Positions 41,481 to 58,410 of a stretch of 64,000 nucleotides of DNA are shown here, piece by piece. The first letter of the stretch is position 1; each line of letters opens with the position of its first letter. The notes beneath the pieces are model-generated. The model did not search any database, had not been told where the DNA came from, and was given only the letters and a program-made list of their open reading frames with translations. Position numbers and translations under genes: made by a program. Source of the stretch: Ophelia neglecta (taxonomy: Eukaryota); assembly GCA_965285935.1 (NCBI GenBank), contig OZ260663.1, forward strand, positions 104,966,001 through 105,030,000, given 5' to 3'.

Positions 41481-44387
41481 GACGGAGTTGTTGATTAAGC
41501 CGTATATCCAACGCAGGATCATTCATAGGAACGTAAACCATCAAGTGATAAAACAGTTCATTAGTGAAAATTACCTCTAGCGCAATGGTTATTATGCAAG
41601 GTGATTTAGCGAATCTAACCTCAATCATTATCCCTCGTAATCATGTTACTTAACAAGGCTGTGGGTTCAATGTGTTCATCTCAAGCTAATGTTATGGTGG
41701 TTGGCATGCTTTCTATATTCAAGCTATGGTAAAGTGTGTTTCGTTTTAAGCAAGAAGACTGGACATAAAAACACCTCAACGCAAAGCGCGAGACACAAAG
41801 CGTGTTCATATGTAACGCAGAATACATCGTTTCTCAGCAGGATTTTGCGCTATTGAAATGCAGGAGTGTTGGACACCAATCTTGTGAAAGTTAAAGCACT
41901 GATTATGTCCTTTAATCCTCGTTTGTTCATCGACCCCCCCCCCCCCCCGACCCCCTTCCCCACATCACTCCTTTTTATAGCAGAGCCGGCGTTTGGGGAA
42001 TCAGAGCCAAACTACAAATTTAGTTTGTCATTAAGGCCTAATGTTATAAACGTGTCACAAATTGCTTTATTAGGTTTTGGAGCAGGTCGCTTTTAGGTGT
42101 TAAGGGCACTTCTCAAAGGAATTAAATGTCTGCCCAAACGTGATAATTATTGTGGCCCGATTTCAGTTCACACACCGGCAACCGTAAAAAGCAATATATT
42201 GAATGTTGGTCAACTCTTCTTTTACATGATGAAGTAGTTATTCTCTATTCTATGATGGTGTGAAACTCGCAGATCATTGATTAAATACACAGACGATAAG
42301 TGGCGAACTTAGGCTTTACATTAACATATAGTTGATGTGCTTGATCATTAGAGGCGCTCGTAGGGAAGTATCCACAAAAGATTGAAACTATGCAAATTCC
42401 AAAGACAGTGAAACAGCCAGTATAATCATTTTCTATGGATCTCTGAATGATCAACATATTTCTTTTACCAAGATAATCAAGACCATACGTGTAGTATACA
42501 TTGGACGTATAAATCTCTTGGTGCACGTTCTTGTCATTCAGGTATTTTCCAACAGATCGGCATCATAAAATTCGATTAACTAAATTGCCTCAACATATAT
42601 ATGGTTTGGCCATTCCAGCTAATAGGCTCGTTATCGCAGCCAGATTAACCTCTTCCAAAATGTTAAGTAAGTTTGTGTCCTGATTGCTGCAGCCTCGGGC
42701 TAGGTTTACACTTGGTGTATGAGAGAAGCACATCATACCCATGGTACACCACGGGGTCTATTTAGGGCCCAGTAACTAAAATAGAGCGACTTTATTCTTA
42801 TACCCTTGTGTCTCGGTACTTTTTTGTTTCTTTAGACATATCAACCGAAAACCAATTTATTATTTTTTACTTTGTCTTGCTCTGTGGGTCTCATTATTTT
42901 AACATGTAAATCCAATCGCTGCGTGAACCTAGTACTTCAGTCCAAATTGTACATGAACACTTTGCGATGCATTTTATATGGGCACATGCTAACCGTAATA
43001 TACATGGAAACTTTGAGGATGCAGTGTACATAACCCCTGTAAGATATACGGTATTTCATACCCGGCAGACCCAAAAAAATCGTTCATCGTAAACTGTCCA
43101 TTAAATGCGAATTAAAAGCGGTCGCAACCTAACAGTTCATTAGATTGATATCATTTGCAATGCGAAGTATTTTCTAAACAAAAGAGCCCGTAGCAGGACG
43201 ATGAAAAAATGCCCTAGAGGATTCTACTATAGACTTAGCTGTCACATACATTTGAAGCTATACGTTAAATAACCCAACCGAAGGATGTACAAGGGACATG
43301 GTAACCTTGATGGTGCAGTCATTAGGTATTCGATTTTACACAGCAGATAGAATAATGTCGTTGTATCATCAGCAAACGAGGAATCCACATTTAACCTTTT
43401 TTTTCTCCTTCTTCTACTTACCCCATGAGTTTTGCATACACATCTCCAAAGGCTTTTACCAATAGGCGGAGGTAGAGAAGGCGTATTTTTTATTTTTGTG
43501 TCAGTATGCTTATTACCCCTTTGACTTCCTTCTAGGTTCCTAGAACTATGAAATCGATCATGCAAAATTAAGCTAATGCTCAAATATAAAGGTATATTAG
43601 CAAACGGAATTTGCACCCTATTTTTATACACAAAATATTTCACAAGTATGGTGTTCATTATAGTTTGTTTAATTTTACTGTACAACTACAGATAAAAAGG
43701 TGTCAAAGGACATTATCTGTTGCCCTAGGAAGGGTTCAAATGTCTAGCAGAAAATGTAACATTAAATAAGACACGTAACATTGAGTATTTATTTTTACCA
43801 AGAGGTTCATATTTTATACCCTTCTCGCGTTCCAGGGCAACAAAACAATGACAAGCTAGTTACGGGAATGAAAGCACTTGAGATGCCCTTAGGGCAGTTT
43901 ATGCGAAGGTGAATAGGAAGTGTTTGGGTCCACTTTATGTGCCTGATAGCTGAAATGTCAATAACCCGGATTTGTCTGAGTGTTCTGGTAGACAATGTGT
44001 CTGACGACCAAGGATCTGTAGACATTAAAAGAAAAATAGGGGAATACATAGACTTAGTGTGCAGCCATGTGTTTTCATTACATGTAAATTACCCCCAAGC
44101 CTTTTCTCAATTCTGTTTGAGCTTAGAGGGTCTTTGTGCGCAGTTGTAGCTGACATTAACTGTTTGTTAAGCCTTGAAGAGGTGATAAATTATTCATAAC
44201 GCGAAGCTCCTGGGTTATCAGTTCGAATATCTCTTGGGACTTCCCGCTGAAAATGCTTTTTTTTATTAACATCTGTGTTTGGTACTCGTGAGTTCCAAGA
44301 GCAATATTTACTTCAGCGTTTATAAAGGTTTTAAATAAAGCTTACTAACTAAAAAAAGGAAGGGGACAGCTAAAGTCGGTGTCGATG

Positions 44388-44508
44388 ACATGGTAAACCT
44401 GGTGGACATAGTTCAAAGGATAAAGGTAAACGTGGAAAAAGTGGTAAACTAGGTAAACGTGGTAATCGTGGTAAACCTGGTAATCATGGTAAACGTGGGA
44501 AACATAGT
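44388..44508 (+). repeat. 9-bp minisatellite (GGTAAACRT)n, left part
   Basis: Degenerate TGGTAAACG/CATGGTAAA units, interrupted by the BEL insertion. Confidence 0.85.
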
Positions 44509-45082
44509 TGTTGGGAAAATACCAGGAATTTGTTAATTTTGGATTATGGCTCTCTATTGTGTATTGGGAAATTATTGTTGGTGTTTAACAGACTGAATAT
44601 TATTATTCCAGTATTAAAATTAAGGTAATTGTACATGTATATAGATACAAAGCTCTAGATAGTAGCTATTCTGTACATGTAGGAAGGATGACGAGCTAAG
44701 TGAGTAGTACGGTATATAGTCTCGGTAATTTTCATATTGTACTTGGTACAAGGTTTTCTGAAGGTGCAATCTGTCACGTCATTTGAACAGCACATCTTTC
44801 AAGGAAAGCTAGCGGTCAGTCGTAAATGTCAGGACAAAGAGAGTTGTATACATATCAGAAATAGTGGGAACACGCTTTAGGTATGTCAACTAAAGAAGTA
44901 TTTATAGCCCTGTAGCTCAAACCAATTACAAAAGGTAGAATTCAGTGGTATTTATAGTAGTGAGCGATAATAGAGTGTGTTAACCATACGAGTATACAGG
45001 TGTTCAGTGTGTAAATTGTATCTTTGTTAAATTGCAGAATAAATATTACAAGCCCCACTGAAGAGTTGAATTATCTGAAACA
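44509..45082 (+). repeat. 5' LTR
   Basis: Identical by eye to 50577-51150. Contains an Inr-like TCAGTC (44816), AATAAA (45038) and a predicted GT-AG intron at 44881-45037. Confidence 0.96.
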
Positions 45083-45103
45083 ACTTCTAAAGCGTCCTTA
45101 AGC

Positions 45104-48100
45104 ATGGAAGATAAAGACCCAGAAACAGCCGCTGAGCAAGGGTTCAGAAATAGAAGAAAACAACTTAGAGCCAGAATTACAAGGACAGTCAATCGTCTGA
45201 AGCAGTCAATACAGAGCAAGCAAGCTAGGGAGAAAGACATTTCCAGGGACTGACAACAGATTAAGAGAGACTATGAAAATGCATTAGATGTTCATTCTGA
45301 AATCTATAACTTTGTAGAAGATGAAGGTGAGATTAAGACTCTCGATGAATGGGAGGCTGATTTAACCCAGCTGATGTATGCAATAGAAGATGTAGTTGAA
45401 CAGTTCTTATCTGATAATCAACCTCAAACCCAGGATGAAGATGTCAACCCTAGAACAACACCAAAGGCCATCCCCCCAACCATGATGGATGTGGCTGCCA
45501 ATAGGCCGGACTCCCCTGATCGTCAGTCAGATGACACATCAGATGGTACCCAGAGCAGTATGACCAGTCGAGACTCATTTGATCGTTGGATCGATGATCT
45601 AACTGAATTCTCAGAGACAGTGTTTTGTAAAACTCTGGAACAAATGACTCTAACAGAGGTATTATATAGGTTAGAAAGTGGTAGAGATGTGCCACAGGTA
45701 CAAATTGATAAATTTAATGGTGACCCTCTATCCTATATTACATTTGTGGAAAGGTTTAAGTTACAGGTTCACGACAAAATCTATTTAACAGATGATAACA
45801 GAATGTTGCAACTAAAGAGTCTCCTAACAGGGGAGGCTGAGAAGTCTATTGCAGGTTTATCTTGTGAAGGTATTATGTATGCCACAGCTTTGAAAACCTT
45901 GAAGGCTCAATTTGGGCAACCTAGTGCTATAGCAAGGGCATATATTAACAAGTTAACAAACAGGGCCAGAATAGGACCAGATGAGAAAAATTTACTGAGA
46001 GACTTTAGTCTAGATTTAACAAATGCTTGTGCAGCACTTAAAAGAATTGACTATATGGCAGACATCAATGCCAATGAGACACTCAGGAGAATTGTGAAAA
46101 GGCTCCCAGATAATCTCATGGACAGGTGGAAGGTCAGAGTGATTGAAATCAGAGAAAAAGATGAGATTCCAAATATAGAGCACATCAATAGTTTCCTGAA
46201 GAAAAGAGTTAAGGCATTATTTGATCCAGATTTTGGGGACCTAAGTAGTACTTCAGACAGAAAGAAAAAACCATTAGGAGCAGTAGATCAGAACTTACCC
46301 AAACAGAGAGAGAGAAAAGTAATCAAGTGCTATATCTGTCAAAATAATCACAGAGTGAATGAGTGTCCTATCTTTCTGAGCCTTACACCAGAAGCTAGAG
46401 TGGAGAAAGCAAAGGAACTGTTTTTATGTTTTTCCTGTTTGAACAAAGGCCATGGCATCCAGACTTGTAGAATTAGGAAAAGGTGTACAAAATGTATTAG
46501 AACACATCATCCCCTGATACATATTGAAACAAGGTTACAGAATACAGAAACTCAGGCAAATTTTACAAATTCCCAAAGTAGTGATTTACAGTCTACCCTC
46601 AATCAAAATCCAGTGAGGCCCTTGACCTATACAGGACATGATCAGAGTGAAGCCATGTTGCCAGTGATCAGAGTAATATTTAAGGCAAAAAATGGCCAAA
46701 TGAGAGAAGGAAATGTCTTGATAGATAGTGGGGCAGGGATAACCATTATCAGAAAACAGCTAGCAGAAGAGTTAGGTATGCAGGGTAAAAGGGAAAACCT
46801 GAGTTTGACAGTAGTCGGCGGTGATGTATTCCATCAGGCAGGAAGCAGGCGGGTCAAGTTCTCAATTCTACCCATTGATGGTACAGAAGAGTTTAATCTG
46901 GAAGCCAATGAAGTGCCTCAGACTATTATGAGCACTAAACCATTAAATCTGGAATGGATCCACTCGTTCCCCCACATAGCAGATATCAATGTCACCCAGA
47001 GAGAAGGTCCCATTGATTTGATCTTAGGTGTGCAATACACCCACTTGCATGCTGAGCTAGAGATTAGGCAAGGCAAACCTTTTGACCCAGTTGCCAAAAG
47101 AACAAGACTAGGCTGGTTTATAATAGGAGGGGAAACAGCAAATTTGCCACCCTCAGGTCAAATATGTTTTGTTGAGAGAAGTGACATTGACTTTGAGAGG
47201 TTTTATGAGTTTGAGTCTCTGGGCATTCAGGCTCCACAGTGTAAATGTACCGCTGATCAGCCAGTGTTATCCTCAGAGAATAGGGAGGCTATGAGTCTAA
47301 TGGAGAAGTCCTGTCAAAAGAAAGAAAACAGGTATGAGATAGGATTACCGTGGAAAGGAAATCCAAGTGACTTACCAGATAGGTATGACATAGCCCTTAG
47401 GCGATTGGTCAGTTTAGAGAAGAAACTTCGAAAATGTCCAGACATGGAAAAATTGTATAGAAAGGCTATGAATGAATTGTTGGAAAATCAATGGTCAAAG
47501 GAAGTGAGTAAGACAGAGTTAGCAAATGAATACTTACCTGTTCATTACCTTCCGCATCAAGGAGTCTATAAACCCGAGAAAGAAACCACTCCACTGAGGG
47601 TGGTATTTGATCCTGCCATCCTGAACACTTACCTGTACAAAGGACCAGGGCTCCTGGGAAACTTACTCAGTATACTGTTAAGATTCAGAGAAAAACCAGT
47701 TGCCTTCACTGGAGATATTAGGAAGATGTATTTGCAAATTCTATTACCAGAGAGTGACACTCATGTACACAGGTACTTATGGAGAGATATGGAGGACAGG
47801 GAACCAACTGTATATAGGTTGTTGAGAGTTGCATTTGGAGATCGGCCATCGCCAGACATGGCAAACTTTGTCATGTTAAGATTAGCAGAGGAATACAAAC
47901 AAAAGTATCCGCAGGCCTCAGAAGTGGTAAAAAATGACAGGTACATGGATGACTTGATCCACTCATGTACAACTGCACAAGAGGCAGGTGCTAAAATGAA
48001 GGAAATAGAAACAATGTTGAGCAAGGGAAGTTTTCAGGTGAAAAAATGGCACTGTTCAGAAATTTCAAAGGCAGAAAAGGTGGCTATAAAAGAAGAAGGA

Positions 48101-50428
48101 AAGAGGATAGAGTTGGATTCTGAGGTTATAAAAACATTGGGTGTTGTTTGGAATTCACCAGAAGATTCTATTGAGTATAGAGTCTGTCTCACAGAAATGC
48201 ATCAAATGACAAAGAGAAATATTCTGTCCGCGATATCAAGAATATTTGATCCACTAGGATTGGCGTCTGTGGTCACAATTCGACCAAGAATCGCCTTACA
48301 AGGACTATGGAAAAGTGGTTATGATTGGGATCAAGAGTTACCAGAGGACCAATGTAAAGTATGGAGAGAAATGTTTGTTGAAATGGAGAGCTTGAACACC
48401 TTGAAATATCCCAGATTTCCTAAAGCAGGTGAAAATGGTGATGTTGAACTCCATATTTTCGCCGATGCCAGTGAAAAAGCCTATGGAGCTGTAGCCTACT
48501 TGTTGTGGCGTGAGGGGATGAAGTCAGAGTGTTCAATTGTGATAGCCAAAGCAAAGGTGGCTCCAGTAAAACAAACAACCATACCGAGATTGGAGTTGAT
48601 GGCTGCACTAGTGGCATCCAGAATGGCCAAAACAATCCAGGCTGAAATGAGAACCAATTTCCATAGAATTGTAGTATGGACAGATTCAAAAATTGTACTA
48701 TATTGGATCAGAGCTGACTCGGCTACACTGAAACCATTTGTAGGGGTCAGAATTGCGGAAATCCAGGAAAATAAAGGTGTTGAATGGAGACATGTTCCAT
48801 CAGACCTTAATCCGGCAGATGATTTGAGCAGAGGGCTGATACCAGAAGAAATCCCAGAGAGATGGTATAGTGGGCCAGCATTTTTGAGAGATACAGAAGA
48901 TATATGGCCAGAAACAATGATTAATGATAAATCAGACATGTCTCAGACAGAATTCAGAAGTCGCAATGTGCCAGTATATAGCATGACAACAGAAGAGAAC
49001 ACAATTAATTGTCAAAATTTCTCAAGCTGGAAGGTCTTGGTTAGAGTGACCGCATATGTGAACCGATTTATCAGTAACTGTAGAGCAAAGGTACAGAAGA
49101 GAGAAACTGAGAAAGGAGGTCTGCAACCAGAGGAGTTAAACAAAGCAGAAGAGTACTGGTTCAAGAAGGCACAAAAAGGGCTCACAAAAACCTATCCAGA
49201 ACTTACACCATTTGAGAGGGATGGAATTATAAGGGTCGGTGGACGACTCAGATACTCAACTTGCGATTATGATCAGATACATCCCATTCTGTTGCCTGCA
49301 GATCACCATGTATCCAAGCTTATTATGAGAGAAACCCATGTGGCTATAGGTCATGCAGCTCCAGAGAGAACTTTATCAGAAAATCGCCGGAGATTTTGGG
49401 TGATAAGAGGTAGAAATCTTGTGAAAGGCATTGTCAGAAGTTGTGCTATATGTAGGAAACTCAGACAGCAACCTCATAGTACCATCATGGGAAATCTACC
49501 TCCAGAAAGGATGAAGCTGTTTAGTCCGCCATTTTTTGTGACTGGAGTGGACCTATTTGGACCCTTCCAATTGAAGATACTTAGGAATAGGACAGTAAAG
49601 GCCTGGGGGGCACTATTTACTTGCGCCACAATGCGGGCTATACATTTGGAAATCGTAGAAGATTTGTCAACACAGAGTTTTCTCCTATCCCTTCGGCGTT
49701 TTGCATCCAATCATGGATGGCCTGAAACTTTCATATCGGACAATGGGAAGTCGTTTGTCGGAGCGCAAAAGGAGTTGAAAAAATTGTTCATTGAAGGGCA
49801 AAAGGAGATTCAGGATTTTATCCTTCTCCATAAAGTCCGTTGGATTTTCACCACTCCCCGTAGTCCTCATCAGGGAGGAATATATGAAAGCCTTATCAAA
49901 CAAACAAAAAATGCTCTGAAAATAGTAGCAGGAGGTCACAAGTTAACATGGAATGAGATGTCCACAATTTTTGCTGAAGTAAAGTGCTTGATAAATAGTA
50001 GACCATTGGGCTACACTTGTAATAATCCTAATGATCCACAACCAATAACACCCAATCATTTACTGTTTGGCAGGGCAAGTGCTGAGATACCTCAAGGTCA
50101 ATTTAGAGATGATGTTTGTGTTAGAAAAAGATTTGAGTTTGTTCAGAGTATAATCAATCAATTTTGGAAAAGGTTCATTCGGGAATATTTCCCCACACTG
50201 AACCGACGAGCCAAATGGTACCGGGAGAAACGACCAGTACAGGTCGGTGATGTGGTGTTAGTCACAGATGAGAATGTTCCACGAGGGCAGTGGCAGTTAG
50301 CCAGAATAGTGGAATTGTACCCTGGGAGAGATGGAGTCATTCGCAATGTTAAGGTTAAAACACAAACAGGGATGTATCAGAGGTCAATACAGAGGTTATG
50401 TCCAGTTGTCGAAAATGATAATATGTAA
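45104..50428 (+). CDS. gag-pol: BEL/Pao Gag-Pol polyprotein, interrupted by one in-frame TGA at 45251-45253 (open from 45374, 1684 aa)
   Basis: Gag KFNGDPLSY; three Cys/His knuckles (CYICQNNHRVNEC, CFSCLNKGHGIQTC, CTKCIRTHHPLIH); protease LIDSGA; RT YMDD; RNase H IFADASEKAYGAVAY and TIPRLELMAA; integrase HHCC plus GVDLFGP/SDNG/YESLIK. Upstream ATG at 45104 is in the same frame. Confidence 0.95.
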
Positions 50429-50576
50429 TATGTTGATATGTGTGGAAAAAGGGTGTAGGTTTTCTTGATTAATTAAGCTTGACAAAATTTGAATCATTAT
50501 AATGTCAATTTATATGTTATTTTGTATTATTTAAAATGTGGTAAATAGTAACCACCTACATTGTGTCCCCGGAGGG

Positions 50577-51150
50577 TGTTGGGAAAATACCAGGAATTTG
50601 TTAATTTTGGATTATGGCTCTCTATTGTGTATTGGGAAATTATTGTTGGTGTTTAACAGACTGAATATTATTATTCCAGTATTAAAATTAAGGTAATTGT
50701 ACATGTATATAGATACAAAGCTCTAGATAGTAGCTATTCTGTACATGTAGGAAGGATGACGAGCTAAGTGAGTAGTACGGTATATAGTCTCGGTAATTTT
50801 CATATTGTACTTGGTACAAGGTTTTCTGAAGGTGCAATCTGTCACGTCATTTGAACAGCACATCTTTCAAGGAAAGCTAGCGGTCAGTCGTAAATGTCAG
50901 GACAAAGAGAGTTGTATACATATCAGAAATAGTGGGAACACGCTTTAGGTATGTCAACTAAAGAAGTATTTATAGCCCTGTAGCTCAAACCAATTACAAA
51001 AGGTAGAATTCAGTGGTATTTATAGTAGTGAGCGATAATAGAGTGTGTTAACCATACGAGTATACAGGTGTTCAGTGTGTAAATTGTATCTTTGTTAAAT
51101 TGCAGAATAAATATTACAAGCCCCACTGAAGAGTTGAATTATCTGAAACA
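50577..51150 (+). repeat. 3' LTR
   Basis: Preceded by a short polypurine tract GGAGGG (50571-50576); AATAAA at 51106. Confidence 0.96.
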
Positions 51151-51460
51151 ATAGTAAACGTAGGAAACATGGTAAACGCGGAAATCTTGGTAATTGTGGT
51201 CAACGTGGTGACAAATGGTGACAACGTGGTAAAGGTGTAAATGTGGTAAGAATGGTAAATATGGTCAAAATAGTAATCATGGTGATTGAAACATGGTAAA
51301 TGTGGGAAACACGGTAACAGGCGGTAAACATGGTTAACATGGTGAACCTGGAAAACCCAAAGGTAATCGTAGTGAACGTTGTGACAAATGTGTAATATGT
51401 GGTGGTGAAGGTAGAGGTGAACGTGGTTTCCGTGGTGGCCTATGTGGCGCACGTGGCCAT
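51151..51460 (+). repeat. 9-bp minisatellite (GGTAAACRT)n, right part
   Basis: The same unit resumes directly after the TSD. Confidence 0.85.
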
Positions 51461-57502: not shown

Positions 57503-57772
57503 TTGTTGTTCGGGGTTGTACGTGGCTTTCAACACTTATATGGTCATATTGCCTCGGTGCTTACTTGTGACATTGGGCTCAATGCCCTCTTTATAGTGCT
57601 GCCTCACTGGAGTACCTGCCGTAGACACCAGACAGGGAACCCCACCCAGTCACATTATACTGACACCGGGTTAACCAGTGCTGATACTACCCCAAAATAC
57701 TGGGCGCCTGGCAGGGGAGCTATCAGTACCTATTTTTACGTCTCGGGTTTGACGCGATCGAGATTTGAACGG
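57503..57772 (-). mobile_element. 5'-truncated copy of the same SINE with target-site duplication
   Basis: Homologous to 58097-58410 up to the B box; flanked by AAAGATAGAAGG (57491-57502) and AAAGATAGTAGG (57773-57784). Confidence 0.85.
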
Positions 57773-58096
57773 AAAGATAGTAGGCAGCCGATGTGACCTA
57801 TTTTTGCACTTGTGGCAAAACAGTGACATCAAAACAGCTCAGATGAAAAGACTACGCGGCGCTTTCCATGCCACTTTTGCCAGGTAGAAAATATTAAGAC
57901 AGACAAGGAGGCCTGGATCAATGTACATCCAGGCACTTGGTTACTGCCGGAAATGTAAACAAATTCACAAAAGGAGCCGAAGTATAATTGAATTGGAAAT
58001 GTGATAATTGGGCATCATATTAAATTATTGAATGATGTACTAACATCTGATTGCTCTATTGGACTATCACCTATCATAAGCACTGAGACAAACATA

Positions 58097-58410
58097 TTGT
58101 TGTTCTTTGGGGTTTTCAACACTTATCTGGTCATATCGCCACAGTGCCTACTTGTGGCAGTGGGCCCAATGCCCTCTTTAGAGTGCTGCCTCACTGGAGA
58201 ACCTGTCGTAGACGCCAGACAGGAAACCCTACCCAGTCACATTATACTAACACCGGATTGACAGGTCCTGATACTAACCCGAAATACCGTGCGCCTGGCA
58301 GGGGAGCTATCAGTACCTATTTTTACGTCTTATGTTTGACGCGATCGAGCTTCGAACTCCGATCTCCCAATTGCGAGACGGACGCCCTAACCACTCGGCC
58401 ACGCTTTGGT
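58097..58410 (-). mobile_element. Full-length tRNA-derived SINE (Meta/MESC-like body)
   Basis: On the minus strand: A box TGGCCGAGTGG, B box GGAGTTCGAAGC, body ...AGTATAATGTGACTGGGT...CAGTGAGGCAGCACT..., (CAA)n tail. Four related copies in the window. Family name is from recall, not a search. Confidence 0.85.

Follow-up and report, generated by a model that had tools for sequence, protein, structure and literature searches.

How does a retrotransposon begin reverse transcription when it carries no primer-binding site (PBS) for a host tRNA? The question is raised by an LTR element in a 64,000-nucleotide stretch of the Ophelia neglecta genome (assembly GCA_965285935.1, contig OZ260663.1, positions 104,966,001 to 105,030,000, forward strand), hereafter the window, to which all coordinates refer. 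An earlier note, made from the sequence alone, described a BEL/Pao element in which the bases following the 5' LTR lack a TGG-type PBS and are instead complementary to a site in the LTR, and proposed that the full complement arises only when a small intron is spliced out. We asked whether this arrangement is real, whether it recurs in related elements, and whether it is better explained by a primer completed by splicing or by some other means.

A young BEL/Pao element without a tRNA-type PBS

We first defined the element and its parts.

44504 to 44508, no strand: target-site duplication ATAGT, 5' copy
44509 to 45082, plus strand: 5' LTR, 574 nt, TG...CA
44864 to 44873, plus strand: initiator-like context around the proposed transcription start at A44872
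44872 to 44880, plus strand: proposed exon 1 (ACGCTTTAG), the first nine bases of the putative self-primer, complementary to 45087-45095
44881 to 45037, plus strand: proposed 157-nt spliceosomal intron in R (GTATGT...pyrimidine-rich...TTGCAG)
45038 to 45043, plus strand: AATAAA poly(A) signal starting at the first base of proposed exon 2, whose first two A (45038-39) would complete the 11-nt primer
45038 to 45082, plus strand: exon-2 part of R plus U5 (45 nt), the template of the predicted minus-strand strong-stop DNA if, as inferred from the Tf1 model, the spliced RNA is cut after base 11
45083 to 45084, plus strand: 2-nt spacer (AC) between the LTR end and the PBS
45085 to 45095, plus strand: PBS TTCTAAAGCGT, complementary to the element's own RNA and not to a tRNA
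45104 to 50428, plus strand: gag-pol open reading frame (DUF1759 gag, aspartic protease, RT, Pao peptidase-family region, integrase, DUF5641)
45251 to 45253, plus strand: single in-frame TGA in this copy
50571 to 50576, plus strand: polypurine tract (GGAGGG within the conserved CCCCGGAGG-type motif), immediately before the 3' LTR; the same motif occurs in relatives
50577 to 51150, plus strand: 3' LTR, carrying the same exon-1 segment (50940-48), intron (50949-51105) and AATAAA (51106-11)
51151 to 51155, no strand: target-site duplication ATAGT, 3' copy

The two LTRs are 100% identical, and the complete element spans 44509-51150. A Pfam scan of the open reading frame returned Peptidase_A17 (3e-48), DUF5641 (1e-30), DUF1759 (1e-12), RVT_1, and Integrase_H2C2, which together with the TG...CA ends, the 5-bp target duplication (within the 4-6 bp expected of the family) and the polypurine tract identify a BEL/Pao LTR retrotransposon. 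The 762-Mb genome contains about ten full copies at 98-100% identity, and the PBS is identical in all 10 full copies. Three sequencing runs of one sample, compared with 44300-45700, proved to be DNA contigs, with a flank depth of about 24 and an element depth of about 270. These contigs show no joint other than the LTR wrap-around, and one of them joins 44508 directly to the sequence after 51155, indicating that the insertion is still polymorphic or heterozygous and that the family was active very recently. The majority contig of the family in these runs reads differently within the codon that is TGA in this copy. The insertion lies inside a 9-bp-period minisatellite.

The observation in the earlier note is confirmed in every sequence detail. 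The 5' LTR ends at 45082 and is followed by AC and TTCTAAAGCGT, with no TGG. ACGCTTTAG is followed by GTATGT at 44881-86, the interval ends ...ttaaattgcag at 45037, and AATAAA starts at 45038; the donor and acceptor positions given in the note, 44881 and 45037, are the first and last intron bases. Joining 44880 to 45038 yields an exact 11-nt reverse complement of 45085-95, 2 nt from the LTR edge, whereas the unspliced sequence gives 9 bp plus one G-U pair. This match is only modestly unlikely on its own, as a complement of 9 nt or more between the LTR and the first 20 nt after it appeared in 37 of 2000 dinucleotide shuffles (p of about 0.02). The case rests on recurrence and covariation in related families.

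The PBS covaries with the LTR across 16 families

We collected relatives at 50-56% amino acid identity in pol from public assemblies; families and contigs are denoted by L numbers. The hosts are Haliotis asinina (L052), H. rufescens (L053), Lineus longissimus (L139), Actinostola sp. (L143), another NCBI assembly (L141, L142), and several environmental and other assemblies, so that abalone, a nemertean, and a sea anemone are represented and the pattern spans at least three phyla. The families form one clade with 100/100 support against more distant BEL elements. In each we defined the LTRs from the two copies and the target duplication and then asked what in the LTR is complementary to the first bases after it.

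None of the 16 families has a tRNA-type PBS. Each instead has, 2-5 nt after the LTR, TT followed by a stretch complementary to a site inside its own LTR. Counting back from the end of that site, positions -7 to -1 are Watson-Crick paired in 13 of the 13 families tabulated, and L057, L142, and L143 show the same exon-1 pairing by eye. The pairs change on both sides at -7 (four pair types), -6, -5, -4, and -3; examples are ACGCTTTAG/CTAAAGCGT in the window, CCTTCAG/CTGAAGG, TAATCTTCAG/CTGAAGATTA, AAACGAG/CTCGTTT, and TCCTCAG/CTGAGGA in L057. A conserved host RNA cannot follow each family in this way. Exact matches to the PBS and to 45083-45100 in the 762-Mb genome occur only at element copies, near-matches to 45083-45100 are at control level, and there are no tRNA genes in the window. 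Because the sequence just past U5 is by definition where minus-strand synthesis starts, these results strongly support priming by the element's own RNA rather than by a tRNA. The ICTV profile describes the family as tRNA-primed (PMC8742986), and we found no report of self-priming in BEL/Pao in the literature that could be searched.

The complement ends at a putative splice donor and resumes after an acceptor

In all 13 families that carry the interval, the complement ends in AG and is followed by GTA, although the downstream sequence is not alignable between families; L053 shows the same CAG|GTA. A pyrimidine-rich AG followed by AA lies 45-97 nt before the LTR end, often abutting or near the poly(A) signal, as in cag|AATAAA in the window and cag|AATTAAA in L055, L075, and L141. 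This length range holds for all families with a recognized acceptor and for the two lineages without the interval (L142 and L143 by eye). In the window, the proposed acceptor is the top-scoring of 16 AG candidates, and the intron occupies the same position as those of 12 other families. By our 3' splice-site score, which is crude, the acceptor ranks first or second in 9 of the 10 scored families, but in L056 it is not among the top three of 38 AGs. The borders are those of a GT...AG spliceosomal intron with an AG|GTA donor.

The two PBS bases that would pair with the AA after the acceptor are TT in every family, and +1 and +2 pair in 12 of 12 families tabulated. In Lineus, the top-scoring acceptor is followed by AAAC and the PBS reads GTTT there, which gives 11 bp across the junction against 7 plus one G-U without splicing. 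However, the AA:TT pairs never vary and so give no covariation, and pairing beyond +2 is not enriched across families, so that the 4-nt extension in Lineus adds only about 1/16 beyond the invariant AA:TT. This part of the argument rests on conservation and not on compensatory change.

The junction was evaluated only by base-pair counts and folds. With leaders starting 2 nt upstream of the complement, the primer-PBS helix is part of the minimum-energy fold in 7 of 10 spliced leaders, in both families without the intron, and in 3 of 10 unspliced leaders (one of them with 6 of the 7 pairs). Duplex energy is better for the spliced form in 9 of 10 families, by 1.4 to 6.3 kcal/mol, and equal in L058. 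Splicing would also bring the partners from 200-650 nt apart to 45-97 nt.

Two lineages have lost the interval precisely

L052, from the chromosome assembly of H. asinina, and the L059/L061/L067 family have no GT...AG interval. Their LTRs read ...CTCTTCAGAA... as one piece, a 10-12 nt contiguous complement of their PBS. The flanks are homologous to exon 1 and exon 2 of intron-bearing relatives, with GAGATCCAC upstream and AATCTT...ATTAAA..GAAATCTC downstream, as in L140. L059 carries a full 5' LTR and 1 kb of flank, which points to a DNA rather than an RNA assembly; either way, L059 and L061 show the joined form. The two lineages are not sisters, as L052 groups with L053, L056, and L058 (98/99), holding the families without the interval together costs 113 log-likelihood units (AU p=0.0008), and 0 of 200 bootstrap trees do so. 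The interval has therefore been removed precisely, at the predicted borders, at least twice. This is what reverse transcription of a spliced RNA produces, and on this evidence from sequence the splice occurs in RNAs that are replicated and the joined sequence works as a primer site.

A conserved context at the inferred RNA 5' end

Nine bases before the junction there is an A in 16 of 16 families. It is preceded by pyrimidines at -10 and -11 (15/16 each) and followed by C at -8 (13/16), with a purine-rich run at -17 to -14. Pairing does not explain this, because -9 and -8 pair in only 7 and 5 of 13 families. The context YYA(+1)C resembles an initiator. If transcription starts there (A44872 in the window), exon 1 is 9 nt and the primer is the first 11 nt of the spliced RNA, the same length and place as in Tf1, in which the first 11 bases pair with the PBS and RNase H cuts between bases 11 and 12 (PMC7175516). 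All 11 bases pair in the window, and in most relatives bases 3-11 pair. This start site is inferred from sequence alone. Very short 5' exons are chemically competent for splicing, but a capped first exon of 9 nt would be unusually short.

Other possible marks of the RNA 5' end were considered and set aside. TATA-like words lie 21-41 nt upstream of the complement in some families (TATACATA at 44848-55 in the window), but they are not at a constant distance and are absent in others. In one rearranged copy, the 3' LTR begins 2 nt into the primer segment, which could have been a footprint of an RNA 5' end; its 5' LTR is complete, however, and the 403-nt filler begins with an inverted repeat of about 22 nt, making a post-integration rearrangement more likely. 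Contigs L062, L064, and L072 all start at the same base inside the intron, but the preceding 8 bases equal the start of the Illumina adapter, so that this is probably a trimming artifact and not a transcript end.

A model for a splice-completed self-primer

We favor, with somewhat better than even confidence, a model in which this element belongs to a BEL/Pao clade that has replaced the tRNA primer with a self-primer completed by splicing. Transcription would start at or next to A44872, and the first nine bases would be joined to AA at 45038-39 by removal of the intron within R. As in Tf1, this 5' end would fold back onto the PBS, or pair with the PBS of a copackaged RNA, be cut after base 11 by the element's RNase H, and be extended from its 3' OH through the spacer, U5, and the exon-2 part of R. 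The resulting strong-stop DNA would transfer to the 3' R, where the intron is normally still present and would be copied together with exon 1 and U3, so that both new LTRs regain it. When the 3' copy is also spliced, the progeny would have LTRs without the intron, as seen in two relatives. All of the roughly 20 LTR copies of this family in the genome keep the intron, so that splicing of the 3' copy must be rare. One possibility is that the acceptor abutting the poly(A) signal makes splicing and 3' end formation mutually exclusive there.

The sequences themselves establish the complementarity, its conservation and covariation, the GT...AG anatomy, and the precise losses, whereas the spliced junction in RNA, the start site, the RNase H cut, the choice between cis and trans priming, and the escape of the 3' intron from splicing are inferences. 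The interpretation in the earlier note, that this element builds its primer by splicing, is therefore partly supported. We regard self-priming as very likely and a primer completed by splicing as somewhat more likely than not, and we have less confidence in obligatory dependence on splicing. The main counterexample to strict dependence is L053, which is intact with 99% identical LTRs and keeps CAG|GTATGA but has no AG in the 44 nt between its CAG and the LTR end, so that it must prime unspliced with 10 bp plus one G-U. The families with the fewest splice-derived pairs have the longest exon-1 complements, suggesting that total duplex strength is what is selected. The broadest form of the model, to which we give about even chances, is that a whole clade of BEL/Pao retrotransposons in marine invertebrates (Mollusca, Nemertea, Cnidaria) makes its primer in this way. 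Nuclear splicing of the 5' R would then license an RNA to prime, while the unspliced 3' R passes the intron on to the next generation.

Alternative explanations

The strongest alternative, although we consider it unlikely, is Tf1-like self-priming by the unspliced RNA. Here the working primer would be ACGCUUUAG(G), pairing 9 bp plus one G-U with 45086-95, and the intron in R would be real but serve another purpose, such as expression, export, control of the 5' poly(A) site, or packaging, with the two extra pairs after splicing as a by-product. In the window, the unspliced duplex is already -12.9 kcal/mol, only 2 kcal/mol weaker than the spliced one. L053 looks functional without an acceptor, all LTR copies of the family retain the intron, and a 17-nt motif conserved inside the intron of one subclade suggests that the intron has a function of its own. 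However, in most families the unspliced match is only 7 bp plus G-U, against 9-11 bp spliced, and the helix is rarely in the minimum-energy fold of unspliced leaders. The second T of the PBS TT and the AA after the acceptor are invariant in all families although the surrounding sequence has diverged beyond alignment, and the unspliced model explains neither. Relatives without the intron also pair through the AA.

A less likely possibility is priming in trans by a separate short RNA. Transcripts that start in the 5' LTR would be spliced and polyadenylated at the AATAAA that abuts the acceptor, and the 5' end of this small capped RNA would prime on the PBS of a full-length unspliced genome. The acceptor abuts or lies close to the poly(A) signal in many families, and this model would explain why progeny always keep the intron. 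It is pure inference, however; the poly(A) signal is 15-40 nt further downstream in several families, and the primer RNA would still need an RNase H cut after base 11.

A host tRNA, tRNA fragment, or other host RNA as primer is very unlikely, because although tRNA priming is the textbook state for Belpaoviridae (PMC8742986) and half-tRNA primers exist in copia-type elements (PMC6317226), it is contradicted by the covariation at five positions and by the lack of any exact complement outside element copies in the genome. Chance complementarity in a defective element is equally improbable despite the modest shuffling result and the in-frame stop in this copy, because the family is polymorphic and nearly identical across copies and the pattern recurs with covariation in 16 families.

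Relation to known priming systems

Tf1/Tf2 and the Tf1/sushi group of Ty3/gypsy chromoviruses prime with the first 11 nt of their mRNA (PMC7175516; PMC6317226). As in those elements, there is no tRNA PBS here, the PBS is complementary to the element's own R region, the duplex is 11 nt in the window and in Lineus, and the complement sits where an initiator-like motif would place the RNA 5' end. By its pol domains the present element is BEL/Pao and not a member of the Ty3/gypsy group, and its 11 nt are split in the DNA as 9+2 by an intron, which is 140-570 nt across families. As here, self-priming that arose independently of Tf1 has also been inferred from sequence for whole lineages, the plant Tcn1 (gypsy) and TAR/Houba/Osr-1 (copia) lineages, but those complements are contiguous in the LTR and no splicing is involved (PMC6317226).

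Canonical BEL/Pao elements (Belpaoviridae, Semotivirus) have an 18-nt PBS for tRNA-Arg or tRNA-Gly (PMC8742986), and Saci2-like elements use tRNA-Leu, Gly, or Lys (PMC12471100). The present element shares the gag-pol domain set and order, the LTR ends, the 5-bp target duplication, and the polypurine tract; it differs in the primer, as its PBS pairs with its own LTR and has no tRNA complement, a difference of mechanism that does not remove it from the family by gene content. Penelope-like elements are the known retroelements that keep spliceosomal introns through transposition (PMC2377424), and they likewise have a functional-looking intron close to the transcription start in the terminal repeat region that is retained by new copies. 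They are not LTR elements, do not use a PBS, and their intron has no proposed role in priming. Retroviruses use the major splice donor to separate genomic from subgenomic RNA, so that a splice decision in the 5' leader decides what an RNA can do in replication. In retroviruses the unspliced RNA is the replication template, whereas here the spliced 5' end would be the form competent to prime. We found no description of a primer assembled across an exon junction in the literature that could be searched.

Implications

Priming is the step that defines how every LTR retroelement and retrovirus starts replication, and only two solutions are established, host tRNAs (whole or half) and the Tf1-type self-primer. 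This finding would add self-priming in a third superfamily that is described as tRNA-primed, a primer that does not exist in the DNA and is assembled by the host spliceosome, and an LTR element that keeps an intron through retrotransposition, with natural processed derivatives showing what happens when it does not. It also matters for annotation, because PBS-based LTR finders that expect tRNA complements will misjudge these abundant invertebrate elements. The arrangement gives a concrete, testable link between RNA processing and the choice of replication-competent RNA.

Insertion Site and Copies of the Element in the Genome

We examined the target site of the element in the DNA runs of the sequenced sample. 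Two runs, X1 and X2, contain a contig with the empty target site (window 44508/51156) as well as contigs with the insertion, indicating that this copy is heterozygous or polymorphic. The element is inserted in a minisatellite of 9-bp period (GGTAAACGT-like units), and the array continues on both sides of the insertion (window 44425-44503 and 51154-51356). The gag of this copy carries a single in-frame TGA at window 45251-45253. The majority contig of the family in the DNA runs reads differently within this codon, so the stop appears to be private to this copy or to a few copies. Elsewhere in the window, two direct copies of a 256-nt unit, 87% alike and 587 nt apart, were observed at 57515-58357 and are unrelated to the element.

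A second copy of the same family is located just upstream of the window start (G000:C5:104959390-104965745, where G000 is the host genome and C a contig), on the opposite strand and about 45 kb from the copy described here. In another copy, L021 (G000:C12:14019973-14023182), the end of pol, the polypurine tract, U3, and the first 2 nt of the primer segment, equivalent to window 50013-50941, are replaced by 403 nt of unrelated sequence that begins with an inverted repeat of about 22 nt. Although the right breakpoint falls at the equivalent of 44874, 2 nt from the proposed RNA start, this structure is probably attributable to a post-integration rearrangement. Finally, four places in the genome (G000:C2:53014162, C2:99566435, C2:101006201, and C8:12110630) carry a PBS-like word, ACTTCAAA(A/T)GCGTCCT(T/A)A, which differs from the PBS word of the element at the base pairing with position -2 and, in two of the four, at a second base. 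A possible explanation would be that these places represent an older sister family.

Sequence Features of the Proposed Intron, Leader, and PBS in Related Families

We next compared the LTRs and leaders of related elements. A 17-nt motif, AAATATGATCGGAATGT (ATGCTTGG in L141), lies 35-55 nt before the acceptor in the putative intron of the related elements L055, L063, L075, L140, L141, and L143. This motif is conserved inside the otherwise unalignable intron of one subclade, including the sea-anemone element (L143), and may have a role in packaging or dimerisation or as a branch region. Eight of its bases equal the start of the Illumina adapter, and three short-read contigs (L062, L064, and L072) break exactly there. 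In the relatives L053, L055, L063, and others, the last bases of U5 (for example, GTACCA or CTACCA) are complementary to a TGGTAC or TGGTAG word 20-40 nt downstream of the PBS, an arrangement reminiscent of the U5-IR stem that flanks the Tf1 and retroviral PBS.

Single-sided variation was found within one family without the intron, in which L059 has G where L061 and L067 have A in the PBS, while the LTR site is unchanged. This substitution turns one A-U pair into a G-U wobble, a tolerated single-sided change. More distant BEL/Pao families in environmental contigs (L078, L079, and L080, BEL elements of about 28% identity) also lack a TGG PBS, with post-LTR sequences TTGAGTAAAAAAC... and TGAGTAATAAAC.... 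These observations raise the possibility that non-tRNA priming may be wider in the superfamily.
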